Source: Ministeria vibrans ATCC 50519 (lineage: Eukaryota; Protista; Filasterea). From it: a stretch of 60,297 nucleotides of DNA. Shown piece by piece: positions 34,322 through 48,746 of the stretch (the first letter of the stretch is position 1; every line of letters starts with the position of its first letter). The notes under the pieces were generated by a model. That model was given only the letters and a program-made list of their open reading frames with translations. It did no database searches and was not told the DNA's origin. A program made the translations under genes and the position numbers. The stretch lies in the NCBI GenBank assembly GCA_943704425.1, contig CALSCP010002085.1, positions 1 to 60,297 on the forward strand. Reading direction: 5' to 3'.

Positions 34322-37300
34322 CATCATTCTGTTCTTTTATTATCATTATGAATTTATTATTATTAGAGAGAGAGAGAGAAAGGAGAAAGTAACAGAGAAG
34401 TAATATTGACTTTTTCTTTTCTTTTTCTTTCCAGAGCCTAAAGTGATTTACGACACAATTGCTGGCCAATTCTGGGTGTTTGCTGCAAGTTCATCGGATA
34501 TAACCATCTTTGTGTGCACCAGTGACTTTTCGGCATGTAATTTTTCGCGTGTGGACGCGCCTGACTCGTTTGGGCGACTCGACGATCCCCTGCCGAGCTA
34601 CGATGCGCTTTCGGATACCTTTGTGGTGAGTGCGATTGGCACTGGATCCGTTGCAACGATTGTGTCGTGCGAGCGGGTCAGCATGCACTGTCTCGTGCAG
34701 GCCGTGTCGCTTGTCGAGGAGGTTGAGGAGTCAGCGGCGATCGTGCTGTACTCACAGAGTGCCAATGTGATGCTCTGGTCCATTGTCGACGATGTTTTCT
34801 CGTTTAACAGCTGCAACCACACTCGAGGGCCCATCTGCGATGCGACCTCTGCCGAAAAGCAGTGTCTTAATGGCGGACAGTGCGCCCAGACAGGTCTGTG
34901 TGTGTGTCCCAGCGCCTTCTTTGGCGATCTCTGTGAGCACACATTCACCCCGTGTTTATCGGGGCCCTGTCAAAACGGCGCACGGTGCATCTCACCCGCA
35001 AACAGCACTGACTTCACCTGTGAGTGCACCGTCAATTTTTTTGGTATGCTCTGCGAACGCAACCTGGATGCAGAACTTGCCCTTGTGCAACAGACCACAG
35101 ATGGCACGCAACTCATTGGACTTCTCAGCGACATCATCACGACGTCTCCTTCGTACAGCAGTGCACCCAACGCACTCTCCATACTCTCCCAAGGACTTCT
35201 CACCGCCGCACAGGGTCTCAACACCACCACCACCACCCAACCAACGACACACCAGCAAGCCTCAACACTCCTCTTGCTACTCAACACCCTCCTTACCGCC
35301 CACACGACCACCCTCGTCCGTCTCAGCCAGGGCCCCACTGTCGTCTCTGCCGTCTCCATCTCCCTCTCCGCCTACACCCTCTCCCTCCCCCACTGCGCTC
35401 TCCCTTCCTTCCTTCCCCTCTCCGCCTTTTTTGCCTCCGCTCAACGTCTTCCTTCCGTCGTCAATCTTTCCGGCGTTTTCTCTTTCGCAAACGTTACTGT
35501 TCAGTTTACCACTGAGTTTTCCCAAAGTCTCACCGTAAGACTAATAATTTAATAATATTTTAATAATAATAATTATTGTGCTTTATACTGGTTTATTTGT
35601 AGGACTCTACGAACACGAACAACTGTTCGGTCCCCCAACAGCTTGTACAATACCACGAATGGCCCTTGAGCACCCGACTGGAGCGACAGATATCCGATCC
35701 TCGTGCGCCCGTCAGTTGGATTGGGTATGCGTCACCTCTTGTCTCGGTGAGTGTCACTGCGGGCACTGGTGTAACCGGGCTCAGTGATGCAGCGCGTGTG
35801 CGACTCACCCTGCCGCTCAGCGTGGCAAATCGGGGTGTTGGAGTGGCACAGTGCTATAGCTGGTCGTATGCGCTTGATGCTTGGTCACAGGCGGGTTGTG
35901 AGGTGCTCATGCGCAACTCAACGCACGTTGAGTGCGCGTGTAATCATTTATCCGACTTTGCGCTGCTCTATGACGGTTCGTTCCCCCCCCAAAATTCGGC
36001 GCTTACGACTTCCGCAACCGTCTTTGTGTGGGTGGGCAGCATTCTTGCACTTGTTATGGGCGTGTGTCTTCTCTTGCTCTTGACCGTAGTCCCGAAACTG
36101 CGCACGCTGGTGAGCAAGTACGTTCTGAATCTCACGCTGGCACTGTTGCTCTTCGACGTGCTTTTTCCCGTTGCGTACGATGCGACAAGCAACGAGGATG
36201 GCTGCCGCGTTGCCAAGACAGTTCTCTATTACGCCCTTTCAACCATTGTGGTGTGGTCTTTAATTTGTGCTCTCGCTCAGCTGTACAGTGTGGGCCAGAC
36301 CGTCGATCAGCTCATGGCCAGGCGCATTGCAAACCAGCGAGCCATGTTTGTCCTTGGATGGCTCGTTCCCATTGTGCCAACTGTCATTCTGACCATCTAC
36401 GACCTTCACGTGTTCAACACGACCGCCTTCAACGTGTGTTGGTTCAGCCAGGAGGGACTCAGCAATGTGGTTGTCGTTGTGGTTTCTCTCGGGTCGCTCC
36501 TGCTCGTCTCACTTCTGGTTGCCTTGCGTGGCTTTATGCGCCTTCGTCGGTCGGTGCAGACCATGGGCTCCCTCAGCAGCATTGAGACGGTGCAAAAGTA
36601 CCACATTTCACGCGCGCTCATGGTCTTCCATGCTCTCTTCATGGTCTCATTCATTCTGCTGTGCACTGCGCAGAGCATTTCGACGCAAGCACTCTGGCTC
36701 GCGTTTGCTCTGTTTAACCTCATTCACATGGCGGGCTTCTTGGCGACTCTGCTTGCATCGTCACGTGTGCGTGAGCTCATCCTCCACGAAGTGGACCGAT
36801 GGAAGCAGACGCACTCCTCCGACTCGGGCGATCTTGTGGGTGGTGGGTTGCGCGGCAGTTGCAAGCAGCAGGCCATCGACGAGATTGCCATGTCGCCACT
36901 GTCAAGGAGAAGAGGCAAAGGGGGGGAAGGGAGCAGTGGTAGTGTGATCGTGGGCTCGGGCGGGAGTGCGCAAGCCATTGAAGTTCCCGAACCGATCAGT
37001 CTTGCCCGCTCACCGCGCACACCGCGCTCGGGACGCACATCCAGCGGCGAGGGAAGTACCATGACACTGCGGAATGTCAACACACTTAATTCACAGGTCG
37101 CCCTGCTGCCACCCCCAGCCAACACGTTTGAGCAGCGACAACGCGGTGTGCGTCGCTCACGCCCCGACATTGCCAGCGACCTTGTCTACATTGATCCGCG
37201 TCACGGCATTCGTCTCAATTCCACCTCACCACCCGTGATCACCACCACCACACCAGCTGAGAGTGACATGTACAGCAACCACAACTACAGCTATACTGAC

Positions 37301-37546
37301 GACGCTGCTGAAAACCCCTTTGCCGCCGAGTGGCGCTCAGTGCTCACCAGTGGCAACAACTCAAGGCATGTCTCTCCCTCCCTCTCTCCCGCTCCAGAGA
37401 CCCCCTTTTTACATCCCCTTCAACAGAACATCTCACACACCACCCCGACACTTCCCTCTTCCGAAATCACTCTTTCCTCTTCCGTCCCCAATCGCTTCTT
37501 GCAAACATCTAATCCTGATTCCACAACAAATTCTTCCTCCGTTTGA
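32584..37546 (+). CDS. Adhesion-GPCR-like receptor (signal peptide, Cys-containing ectodomain repeats, 2 EGF, GPS, secretin-like 7TM)
   Basis: EGF domains CLNGGQC...FGDLCE and CLSGPCQNGARC...CE; GPS CYSW...WSQAGC...CACNHLSDFALL directly before 7 TM helices (LNLTLAL, GWLVP, CWF). Confidence 0.88.
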
Positions 37547-41585: not shown

Positions 41586-44482
41586 ATGTCAACATCCAGC
41601 GATTTTGCCGAGACGCGCTTCCACAAATACGCCCTTGTGGTCGGTCGAAGTGTGTTTGACAAAAACACTCTTGAGCTCGACACACTCGCAGGCGTCGCAC
41701 CGACCGTCCGCAACGTTGCCGTCGACCTTGTGCGCAACGGATTCAACGTCGTCGTGCTTGCAGACACGCCCATGGCGCTGTCGCAGCCCGCTTTCGACGC
41801 GACGCTGGAAAAACAATACAGCGCCATTGCCGACGACGCCGTGCGGGCTCGCCGGCTGCAGTGGTGCCGGGGGGCGGCTACGAGGCAGCACATTGCTGTC
41901 TGCGTAAAGGAACTGGCGATAATGGTCCCTGGACACCTTGCTGGGCGCCTCGACCAAATGGTCGTTTACGTTTGTGCACACGGCGTCGCCAACGCCAGCG
42001 ACGGGTCGTTTGGGGCCGCGCTGGGCGATGTGCAACGCACCGTAGCGTCGTACACGGACTCGGCGGGGGCTGCGGTCGCTGCGTGCTACGAGGGCGCGTA
42101 CACGATCGACAAGGTGCGCGAAGACGTGGCTGTCGACGAGGCGCTGCAACGGTGGTACAGCACGCTCGTGGTGATGGACACGTGCCAGGCAGGGGGCTCG
42201 TTTGGCGGCGCAACCGAGCCGTTTCTTCACTTGCAGGGCGAAGTCGAGGGCGAGAAGATGCAGAGGCTGTTCCAGCGCGAGTCGTACCAGTGCTTGGCGA
42301 GTGTGCCTTGCAAGCCAGCGGCCTTCTGCCAGCGTCACGGCACCGCGCTGTCCACGGCGTTGCAACGAGCATGGCTCCGTCCACCTGGCGATGGAGGGGC
42401 GTTTGCACGGGGGCGAGAGGGAGCGGGGCGGTGGGCGTCGATCGGGTGCGTGGTGGAGCGTGTGAATGTCGAGCTGGCGACACTCGCTCAGACGCACCCC
42501 GAGCACTTTTACAGCAACCCGGCGACGTGCGAGCTCAGCCGCATGCCATGGCGCGTCACGTCCAACACGGGAGAGTTCTTCGCATTCAACAGCAAGTACA
42601 CGAGTCTCAACAAGCTGAGAATGGTACCCGTCATCACGATGAGTTTTACGGGACGCGAGAAGGAGCTGAAGGAGTTGGAGACGCGTCTGCAAGAGAGTGG
42701 CACTGCAACGATTGGGAACCTGGCGGTGACTGCGGGGGGCGGAGTGGGAAAGACGACGCTGGCGGTGGAGTATGCGAAGCGGAACGAGCATATGTACCAT
42801 CTTTTGGTGTGGGTGCAAGGAGCGAGCGAGGCGACGATGGTCGCGTCGTATCGGCGAGTGGTGCACCTGTATTCGATCAAGGGAGTGCACCATCGGACGG
42901 CAAAGGACGAGGAAGTGGTGGAGGCGGTGAAGAGGTGGCTGGAGCAGGAGGAAGGATGGTTGATGGTGCTGGACGGATGTGATGTGATCACACGAGAGAT
43001 GGCGAAGATGATGCCGAGTTGTGGCGGAGGGACGCGAGGGAAGGTGCTTGTGACAACACGATTGCAGAGTGTGGATGAACTTGGTGAGGAGTTCAAGACG
43101 AGTCGGGTGGCACCGTTGTCGCTGGAGTTGTTTGATGAAGAGGAGGGACTGGCGTACATGAAGAAGCGGCTGTCAACATACCGAGAAGAAGACGACGATG
43201 AGGATTTGAGGAAGATTGTGGTGGAACTTGATGGAATGCCACTGGCACTGTCGCTGGCTGCGGGGTACTTGAGCCTGACGCCGTTTGTGACGGCGGGGGA
43301 GTATTTGGCACGGATGGAGGTGGACCGATTGGATGCGTTGAAGAAGAAGGTTCGGGGCGTTCAGACAGAGGATCGTGTGTTGTCGACGTATGGACGGAGC
43401 TTTGGACGGGCCGTGGAGATTGGAGGGAGGGTGATGGTTGAGAAGATGGTTGGGGTGATGGGGTTCCTGGAGGGGAATGGAATGGAGGAGGAGGTATTGC
43501 GACTGTTGGTGACGGGGAGGAGGACGAGGGAGGATGGTGTGGTGGGGAAGGATGAGTTTGATGTTGCGTTGGATGCACTGCGACAGTTGTCGATCGTGAA
43601 TGTGAGTCGGAATGTGTCGCGAATGCATCGGTTGGTGCAGGATGTGTGTCGGGCGGTGGCGTTTGGAGATGAGGATGAGCGGTGGGATGCGCTGCAGGGG
43701 CTTGGGAAAGTGTTGAAGGAAGAGATCGATGATGAGAAGAAGGTGTATGATGATATGGAATGGAGTCGTGTGGTGGGAGTGCATGGGATGCGAGTGTTGG
43801 GTTGGGCGAGGGGGGAGGTAGAGGAGAGGAGGGGAGCGGGAGATACTGAGGAGTATGAGGGGGGTGTTGTGTGGCTTGGGATCCATTTGAGTAATGCGTG
43901 GAGTACTTTGGGAGTGTACGGGTTGTCTCGAAGTGCGTCGNNNNNNNNNNNNNNNNNNNNNNNNNNNNNNNNNNNNNNNNNNNNNNNNNNNNNNNNNNNN
44001 NNNNNNNNNNNNNNNNNNNNNNNNNNNNNNNNNNNNNNNNNNNNNNNNNNNNNNNNNNNNNNNNNNNNNNNNNNNNNNNNNNNNNNNNNNNNNNNNNNNN
44101 NNNNNNNNNNNNNNATGCACAAGGAGACTACAGTCGTGCTCTTGAGTACTATGAGCGTGCTCTGACTATTAAAGAGAAGTCTGTTGGTCCCGACCACCCA
44201 TCCGCAGGAGCAACACTCTTCAACATGGCGCTTTTGTCCACGCAACAAACCAATTTTTCCCGTGCCCTTCAATACTGTCAACGTGCGCTTTCCATCTTCC
44301 AGCACACTCTTGGACCAAATCATCCGCATACGCAAAAGGCCTGCACGCTAAGCACCCAACTACAAACCCGCCGACCAAACAGCTACCGCTCACGTACTCC
44401 CCACTTCTCTCTTACCCATCTCATTGCATTCGGTTCTCTCACTCTTTTGGCTTTGGCCATTGCAGTTCGACTCAGAAAATGA
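41586..44482 (+). CDS. NLR-like STAND protein: caspase-like (C14) domain + NB-ARC + TPR + C-terminal TM; interrupted by an assembly gap
   Basis: CAHG and MDTCQ dyad motifs; GGVGKTTLA, LMVLDG, VLVTTR, GMPLAL, MHRLVQ; after the gap, TPRs QGDYSRALEYYERALTIKEKSVGPDHP; hydrophobic tail. Confidence 0.85.
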
Positions 44483-47703: not shown

Positions 47704-47822
47704 GGCGGACTCGGAGAATTGAACTCCGGACCTCTCGCACCCTAAGCGAGAATCATACTATTAGGGCTAAGAACACAAGGGAAGAACCGCTTGATGTTTT
47801 ATCCTCACTAGACCAAGTCCGC
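47704..47822 (-). tRNA. trnP: tRNA-Pro(AGG) with a 47-nt non-canonical intron in the D-loop (47759-47805, between G18 and G19)
   Basis: Removing the insert gives GCGGACTTGGTCTAGTG|GTATGATTCTCGCTTAGGGTGCGAGAGGTCCGGAGTTCAATTCTCCGAGTCCGCC. It has a perfect 7-bp acceptor stem, intact anticodon and T stems, and a downstream poly-T. Confidence 0.9.
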
Positions 47823-47849
47823 TGTTTTTATTGACGAGGTGCAAAAAGT

Positions 47850-47864
47850 GCTATATAAATATAT
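47850..47864 (-). promoter_or_regulatory. TATA-like element about 30 nt upstream of tRNA-Pro
   Basis: Minus strand reads ATATATTTATATAG, 28-42 nt upstream of G1. Confidence 0.45.
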
Positions 47865-48639
47865 TTTGACATGTGATATTGCAAAATCTTCCATGTCTGA
47901 CATGGCAGTCTCTACTTCATGTGTGAATGCACGTCAATGAATGGTGAAAGTGAAAAAAAAGTTTGAGTTTCGCGAATTAAATTTTTTTTAAAAAAAATTA
48001 TTTGAAGTGTGTGTATCAAGCCCATCTTGTAGTAACAATAAGCCATTGATGATAATGCGTTGAAAACAAAAGCACCCCAGCTTGGCCTTGAAGCAGATTT
48101 TTAAGTGGACTTTAATGGTAATAAATAATCGAGGAGAGAGCCACTAGGAAAGTGGAAACTCTCTTACGAGTGACGTCCGGCAGGCCGGCAGGTCGCCGGT
48201 CGGCGCTCGCCGCTCGGGGGTATGAGTGGTATCTAAAAGCCTTAAACTGCTAATGTTCCATTTTGAACATTTCGCGTGTTCGACACTGAAAAGATCGGGT
48301 TTGAACTTTTAATCAGATTTCGCTGTGAGTAGATAAGCCAATCAGAAGTCAATCTGCTAACTGTTGTTTCACTCACTTGTTTGCTTAATGCTTATATTTA
48401 TACTGCTACGACAAACAGACAAAGAAGAAGGCCGAAATATATAGAAGACGAAGAATCAATCAGAAAATTTAACAGATGATTCTGACATGTGCGTGGGTTT
48501 AGAGAATCATTGACAACCACGAAAAAGGGTTAACATAGATCGCTCAAGTATTTTAGCTTTGGGTGTGGGCTACTTCGTGATGACTATGGAAAATATGTTT
48601 AAATAGCACATTTGAGCGTACTCTGTAAAAACCTAAAAT

Positions 48640-48746
48640 TGCGAGATGCCCCGGGTTCAAAATTGAAAACGTCTGTTTTCGTGAACATTCCCCGGCTTCT
48701 CCATTCCCTTGGGGAAGTAACTCAGTGGTAGAGTGCTCGCTTTGCA
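48640..48746 (+). tRNA. trnA: Circularly permuted tRNA-Ala(UGC): 3' half 48640-48703 (T-loop intron 48661-48688), 7-nt spacer, 5' half 48711-48746
   Basis: Reordered mature sequence is GGGGAAGTAACTCAGTGGTAGAGTGCTCGCTTTGCA|TGCGAGATGCCCCGGGTTCAA|TCCCCGGCTTCTCCA. All four stems pair, and the G3:U70 alanine identity pair and A73 are present. Confidence 0.92.

Follow-up and report, generated by a model that had tools for sequence, protein, structure and literature searches.

We have identified a split tRNA gene that is very probably a live nuclear gene for cytosolic tRNA-Pro(AGG), the transcript of which would carry a 47-nt intron between G18 and G19. Splicing of this transcript is inferred from the sequence, as there are no RNA data. 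The gene is located on contig C2085 of a eukaryotic genome assembly (29.7 Mb in 2860 contigs); the whole stretch of DNA that was analysed, 60,297 nucleotides long, is called the window here. Furthermore, we are quite confident that the gene would represent one instance of a genome-wide, BHB-dependent disruption of tRNA genes, comprising D-arm introns, T-loop introns and permuted genes. Eukaryotic tRNA introns are taught as occurring only at position 37/38, because the heterotetrameric splicing endonuclease measures from the mature domain. In yeast and human, this ruler measures how far the anticodon loop is from the mature domain, and it contacts the D-arm.

The tRNA-Pro(AGG) gene is encoded on the minus strand at 47822–47704, and reading of the sequence shows that it is of the eukaryotic type and complete, these coordinates spanning exactly tRNA positions 1–73. 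Exon 1 (47822–47806, minus strand) comprises positions 1–18, namely the 5' strand of the acceptor stem, U8, G9, the 5' strand of the D-stem, and A14 G15 U16 G18. The intron (47805–47759, minus strand) lies exactly between G18 and G19 and forms a hairpin. Exon 2 (47758–47704, minus strand) comprises positions 19–73: G19 U20 A21, the 3' strand of the D-stem, an anticodon arm with the loop UU-AGG-GU, a 5-nt variable loop, the T arm, and the 3' strand of the acceptor stem with the discriminator base C73. Read across the insert, the D-loop is A14 G15 U16 G18 / G19 U20 A21. All four arms are complete, the invariant bases A14, G18, G19, A21 and U33 and those of the T-loop are all contained in the exons, and the two exons form an acceptor stem with seven of seven pairs and a D-stem that is also matched. 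Because the anticodon loop UUAGGGU is unbroken, the criterion for a canonical 37/38 intron is not met. A terminator-like run of the RNA polymerase III type (TTTG followed by T15; 47703–47685, minus strand) begins directly after C73, and other nuclear tRNA genes in this genome likewise end in a T-run.

Standard tools do not report this gene. In the whole window, ARAGORN with default settings found no tRNA genes, and no Rfam match reached the gathering score; in E-value mode, RF00005 matched 47704–47776 with 21.4 bits, under the cut-off of 29. When ARAGORN was allowed anticodon-loop introns, it called the Pro(AGG) gene as Ile(aat), and in the same mode it misread Gln(UUG) as Trp and Ser(CGA) as Thr; these calls were discarded as artefacts. 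The last of them concerns a class II gene on another contig (G000:C1793:34874–34983, plus strand), for which Ser(CGA) with a 29-nt intron at 37/38 is a better reading than Thr(cgt); its discriminator base is separated from the T-run by a 23-nt hairpin. The anticodon arm of the Pro(AGG) gene is the only eukaryote-type one for this tRNA in the assembly. The precursor, insert included, exists in a single copy in the assembly, and the insert is thus not a dispersed repeat.

Under the BHB ruler used here, helix H consists of exon bases −6 to −3 relative to the 5' cut, paired with intron bases −6 to −3 relative to the 3' cut, and each cut falls 2 nt 3' of this 4-bp helix. The Pro(AGG) junction was fixed by homology, with no choice of register. 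Three of the four positions of its helix H are paired (U13-A, A14-U and G15-C, contributed on the intron side by bases 42–44), the first position being a C12·A mismatch. The 5' bulge is 3 nt (U16 G18 / A) and is completed by the first intron base, and helix h' has four of five pairs, formed by intron bases 2–3 and 5–6, with its middle position unpaired. The 3' cut falls exactly 2 nt after H, inside a 7-nt loop, and there is no outer helix h in register. The motif falls short of the strict archaeal hBHBh' form, having no outer h and a 7-nt loop in place of the 3' bulge, and belongs instead to the relaxed BHBs, in the HBh' class as defined for Cyanidioschyzon merolae (PMC3728597).

Shuffled introns reached the quality of this junction in 0.8–1.2% of trials (P = 0.008–0.012). 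In the minimum free energy (MFE) fold of the precursor the insert pairs with itself, while the acceptor, anticodon and T arms are kept (z = −2.4), and a fold constrained to the BHB register lies 2.4 kcal/mol above this minimum. Taken by itself, the insert hairpin has no unusual stability (z = −1.0). A scan of the precursor for BHBs alone was unspecific, since 86 of 4339 junction pairs did as well in pair counts, and such a scan cannot locate the junction by itself. The original prediction had described a 47-nt insert that splits G18–G19, that folds on itself, and whose CUA pairs with exonic U13 A14 G15 beside a UG/A bulge in a relaxed BHB motif. Our reading of the minus strand confirmed the insert and the MFE fold contained the self-pairing; the proposed pairing is real, the energy cost of its register being small, and the relaxed motif is supported by its HBh' form and the shuffle test.

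Evidence that the gene is alive was obtained from its paralogue Pro(CGG) (G000:C2066:28477–28589), in which the D-arm is unbroken and which has two introns of its own, one of 28 nt at 25/26 and one of 13 nt at 37/38. When the two whole precursors were aligned with MAFFT, their mutually exclusive introns caused a misalignment, and the alignment was replaced by a comparison piece by piece by coordinates, in which the exons were never joined and the spliced sequence was not scored. Exon 1 is identical to the corresponding piece of Pro(CGG) (L088:408–424) at 13 of 17 positions, the four differences being acceptor-stem bases that are compensated in exon 2. The pieces of exon 2 show identities of 7/7, 11/12 and 22/36, with all of the T-stem and acceptor differences compensated. 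Positions 6–25 are identical in the two genes, including across the proposed junction, and within positions 26–37 the sole difference is at base 34. The stem pairs that differ, four in the acceptor stem and four in the T-stem, have all changed on both sides (8/8) and none is broken, which implies that both genes evolved under cloverleaf constraint. The intact D-arm of Pro(CGG) also fixes the position of the junction at G18/G19 independently of the BHB. The criteria for a pseudogene or a dispersed repeat are not met by the Pro(AGG) gene, which is single copy, has perfect stems, and possesses both a promoter element and a T-run. The view put forward originally, that the rest of the tRNA is intact and that the gene is not a pseudogene, is upheld by the compensated pairs, the promoter element and the T-run.

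The alternative that survives best is a young pseudogene, that is, a gene killed by the 47-nt insertion, with the codons CCU/CCC being read by other Pro tRNAs or by Pro(AGG) genes borne in tRNA arrays. Three uninterrupted Pro(AGG) genes of this kind exist, two on contig C585 and one on C2093, and they could in principle make the split gene dispensable; since they exist, its indispensability cannot be argued. The imperfect BHB and the lack of significant stability in the insert hairpin also agree with a pseudogene. However, the array-borne genes are of an atypical type, with a T-loop in which the 54–58 pair is swapped, and no promoter element was found in the array stretch that was read upstream of the Pro genes on C2093; a gene for an rve integrase adjoins another compact array, on C2083. 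In the split gene, by contrast, the stems, invariant bases, promoter element and terminator are all intact, the junction conforms to the BHB ruler (P ~0.01) with no register having been selected, and the same relaxed motif recurs at the D-loop junctions of three tRNA genes with other amino-acid specificities. We consider a pseudogene unlikely, though not to be ignored. The absence of a spliced product together with uninterrupted Pro(AGG) copies, or an insert that proved to be a dispersed repeat, had been named beforehand as findings that would refute an intron; the uninterrupted copies do exist, albeit in an atypical form, so that half of the first condition is fulfilled, whereas the insert is not a dispersed repeat.

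The compact arrays each contain four to nine atypical tRNA genes, and are located on G000:C585 (around 22.3 kb and at 35.6–37 kb), on C2093 (around 9 kb) and on C2083 (7.1–8.1 kb and 38.1–38.5 kb); the array loci overall are L001–L009 and L061. They include Pro(AGG/CGG/UGG) genes with the T-loop ATCGTCC, as well as 74-nt Leu tRNAs that lack a long variable arm. Next to the arrays are masked stretches of N. The rve integrase open reading frame (ORF; L005:124–1239) adjoins the array on C2083, not the Pro(AGG) arrays of C585 and C2093. A mobile or viral element may carry these arrays as cargo. Our searches yielded no eukaryote-type Pro(UGG) gene, merely Gly(GCC) genes or chance matches.

It is also conceivable that the transcript is processed otherwise, through other cut sites or by a BHB-independent mechanism, or that it has a different function, such as supplying tRNA halves. 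The MFE register differs from the BHB register, and a BHB that is formally better (H 4/4, h' 5/5) results from an alternative 3' site 6 nt upstream. However, use of this site would leave a 13-nt D-loop without G19, and the G18/G19 junction is the only one that restores the D-loop found intact in the Gly(GCC) genes as in Pro(CGG); processing of another kind seems very improbable to us. Chance resemblance, or an assembly artefact that joined two unrelated tRNA-like fragments, can scarcely be credited despite the fragmentation of the assembly into 2860 contigs, as pairing between the exons is perfect in the acceptor stem and the D-stem, and they are placed between the promoter element and the terminator, well inside the 60-kb contig. 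A live gene with an intron between G18 and G19 remains the reading that we prefer.

Around 820 nt from the Pro(AGG) gene, in divergent orientation, lies a permuted tRNA-Ala(UGC) gene (48640–48746, plus strand). Its parts, all on the plus strand, are positions 38–58 (48640–48660), a T-loop intron (48661–48688), positions 59–73 (48689–48703), a 7-nt linker (48704–48710) and positions 1–37 (48711–48746). The 28-nt T-loop intron, at 58/59, has a complete helix H (4/4) with flanking helices and meets the strict BHB criterion, and the 37/38 junction is a BHB between leader and trailer (h 5/5, H 4/4).

Further disrupted tRNA genes were found elsewhere in the assembly. Gln(UUG) has a 44-nt D-loop intron with an HBh' motif, Gln(CUG) a 29-nt intron at 22/23 (H 4/4, h' 4/5), and Leu(CAA) a 22-nt D-loop intron, again with HBh', in addition to one at 37/38. 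At the two introns of Pro(CGG), H is 3/4 and h' 5/5 (25/26), and H is 4/4 (37/38). Permuted genes comprise Gly(CCC), with its junction at 37/38 (h 5/5, H 4/4); Lys(CUU), which is present in two copies with the junction at 59/60 (h 5/5, H 3/4, h' 5/5); and Arg(UCG), which is permuted in the D-loop, with HBh' there, and has a 37/38 intron as well. The permuted Lys(CUU) and Gly(CCC) junctions, like those of the neighbouring Ala gene, are counted among the strict BHBs. The D-loop junctions of Pro(AGG), Gln(UUG), Leu(CAA) and the permuted Arg(UCG) gene are all four alike, with H 3/4, a strong h' and no h. When 13 junctions were pooled, 44 of 52 H positions were paired, compared with 37.5% expected (binomial P ~4e-12); this value is optimistic, for several of the other junctions are the best of three to six registers, whereas that of Pro(AGG) involved no such choice. 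A genome-wide search with a T-loop pattern gave 61 matches against four for the control, and the disrupted genes were recognized by reading these matches and examining their junctions. Many of the 61 were not reported by the search with the Rfam tRNA model, although that model search scored only 63 of 508 candidates. Canonical 37/38 introns coexist in this genome, in Leu, Ser, Asp and Arg tRNA genes.

Two introns at different positions in different tRNAs, that in the T-loop of Ala(UGC) and that at 22/23 in Gln(CUG) (L077:1444–1472, plus strand), have 17 of their first 20 bases in common. The common part is the inner hairpin GAAAAC-NTCT-GTTTTC, and none of 1000 shuffles scored as high, a likeness that hints at a common origin or a spread of introns. 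Among the ectopic introns this was the only significant pair, and the Pro(AGG) intron was not significantly similar to any other. At two additional loci, L083 (G000:C1653, around 16900, minus strand) and L092 (G000:C2553, around 104930, plus strand), a T arm, the 3' strand of an acceptor stem and a T-run are present, at L092 together with a Lys(UUU) anticodon arm; neither locus has a matching 5' acceptor strand within −400/+300 nt. They could be cases of further permutation, of an acceptor or D-stem intron, or of split genes.

Upstream of the Pro(AGG) gene is a promoter-like element, AAAATR-N7-ATAKCAC followed by a T-rich stretch (47848–47867, minus strand), which ends around 25 nt before tRNA position 1. 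An exact match to the same pattern (48590–48609, plus strand) precedes the permuted Ala(UGC) gene, and these two places, in front of the Pro and Ala genes, are the only ones in the window where the exact element occurs. Alignment of around 20 nuclear tRNA genes placed the element, AAAATR-N7-ATAKCAC(W)TTT, 25–55 nt upstream, and it accompanies nearly all nuclear tRNA genes. Across the genome, exact matches to the pattern number 30, compared with four for the reversed control. Genes could be read at 16 of these 30 matches, the other 14 being at places without a recognized tRNA and not included in the count that follows: four of the genes are uninterrupted, four have a 37/38 intron only, and eight have an ectopic intron or are permuted. 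We infer that the element is a gene-external promoter that would act in spite of disturbed A and B boxes, its activity being deduced, not observed. The shared upstream element also offers a structure-independent route to every RNA polymerase III tRNA gene of the organism. Both wider claims of the original prediction have stood up: the permuted Ala gene is there in all its parts and with its BHB junctions, and non-canonical processing, so far as it can be judged from the DNA alone, appears widespread, since half of the readable promoter-tagged genes are of the ectopic-intron or permuted kind.

The following pathway may be proposed for the Pro(AGG) transcript. RNA polymerase III would start from the upstream AAAATR-N7-ATAKCAC element and stop at the T-run, the sequences being present and their use inferred. 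Folding of the precursor would give the acceptor, anticodon and T arms, with the intron extending the D-arm as a hairpin, and exonic C12 U13 A14 G15 would pair with intron bases 42–45 to give helix H, at three of its four positions. The 5' cut would then lie in the 3-nt bulge (U16 G18 / A), which h' closes on the far side, and the 3' cut two bases 3' of H on the other strand, in the looser 7-nt loop, as in a relaxed BHB of the HBh' type. The tRNA splicing endonuclease is inferred to cut both sites without measuring from the mature domain, and a tRNA ligase to join the halves into a tRNA body of 72 nt; neither step has been observed. Profile searches of the genome found matches for catalytic endonuclease subunits of the Sen2/Sen34 type (PF01974, on C1244 and C1078), together with one match each for a Sen54-type gene (PF12928, on C1258) and a Sen15-type gene (PF09631, on C1907).

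The host has T-box genes, and no match to the chlorophyll a/b-binding (LHC) family was found in its genome. Proteins encoded in the window include SNX17-FERM, EGF plus GPS, NB-ARC, F-box and ankyrin types, and a Nopp140-like protein has its best matches in animals (55–60% identity). The ORFs with EGF and a GPS motif resemble the extracellular region of adhesion receptors, and the NB-ARC ORF is 859 amino acids long (window 34443–37546 and 41586–44165, plus strand). There is no close relative in the protein database, where the best match was 46% identical. With T-box genes present, LHC absent and the best matches animal-like, the host is read as a non-photosynthetic, opisthokont-like protist rather than an alga, and it is probably a unicellular holozoan. 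Contig G000:C1523 (at least 55 kb) contains around 27 bacterial-type tRNA genes, including a tRNA with the anticodon UCA (UGA read as Trp), and is presumably the mitochondrial genome.

The evidence seems to us evenly balanced as to whether a non-photosynthetic, opisthokont-like, probably holozoan protist with a four-family Sen endonuclease performs genome-wide tRNA maturation with a BHB at any position and a dedicated upstream promoter, and is the first such organism outside algae, nucleomorphs and archaea. If this is true, such maturation either originated independently or had a much wider ancestral distribution, and a eukaryotic Sen2/34/54/15 enzyme is able to work independently of the mature domain. 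If the host is a relative of animals and fungi, then disrupted tRNA architecture is no algal curiosity, and the host provides a second, independent system for the recognition of a D-arm BHB by Sen2/34/54/15. The same circumstance would explain why standard annotation gives too few tRNA genes in such genomes.

In the literature that we searched, ectopic tRNA introns and permuted tRNA genes of eukaryotes have been described only in C. merolae, Chondrus crispus, the Mamiellales and the nucleomorphs of Guillardia and Bigelowiella (PMC3728597, PMC3978253, PMC13578239), and nothing relevant was found for Capsaspora, holozoa or opisthokonts. Introns outside 37/38 are known, as here, in Chondrus crispus and the Guillardia theta nucleomorph, and permuted genes in Ostreococcus, Micromonas and the Bigelowiella nucleomorph (PMC13578239, PMC3978253), but these cases, unlike the present one, all belong to algae or to the relict nuclei of algae. 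Moreover, most of the G. theta introns cannot form a BHB, and the green algal genes are permuted with no ectopic introns reported (PMC13578239, PMC3978253).

Archaeal BHB introns (Thermoproteales, Nanoarchaeota and others) likewise exist at many positions, including the D-loop (PMC5829648, PMC6379350), and their BHBs are recognized locally, independently of the mature domain, as is inferred for Pro(AGG). They are cut by (alpha-beta)2 or epsilon2 endonucleases, and the enzymes of broad specificity tolerate relaxed motifs (PMC5829648, PMC6379350). Permuted tRNA genes are also present in the archaeon Thermofilum. Unlike the archaeal genes, Pro(AGG) is a eukaryotic nuclear gene with an RNA polymerase III-type promoter and T-run, in a genome with the four-family enzyme set Sen2, Sen34, Sen54 and Sen15. 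The canonical 37/38 intron presumably shares its enzyme family with the Pro(AGG) intron, and both have a relaxed BHL in which the last exon bases pair with bases near the 3' end of the intron to give H; however, the Pro(AGG) intron is located at 18/19, where it disrupts the D-arm.

The closest parallel is C. merolae, in which nuclear tRNA genes have D-loop, D-stem and T-loop introns, sometimes together with a 37/38 intron, and in which the same motif classes, strict hBHBh' and relaxed hBH and HBh', have been distinguished (PMC3728597). Both genomes also have circularly permuted genes with a BHB-forming leader and trailer, intron sizes within 11–69 nt, and many genes that standard tRNA finders miss. 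In C. merolae transcription relies on an upstream promoter in place of intact A and B box spacing, a role that is inferred for the upstream element of the present genome. Unlike this red alga, the present host has T-box genes, lacks LHC and shows animal-like best protein matches, and it possesses a homologue of Sen15, a subunit that has not been found in C. merolae. For the C. merolae genes there is verification by RT-PCR and northern blotting, whereas that of Pro(AGG) is without RNA data. The mechanism is thus of a class already known, that of C. merolae, and the lineage appears to be new for this class.
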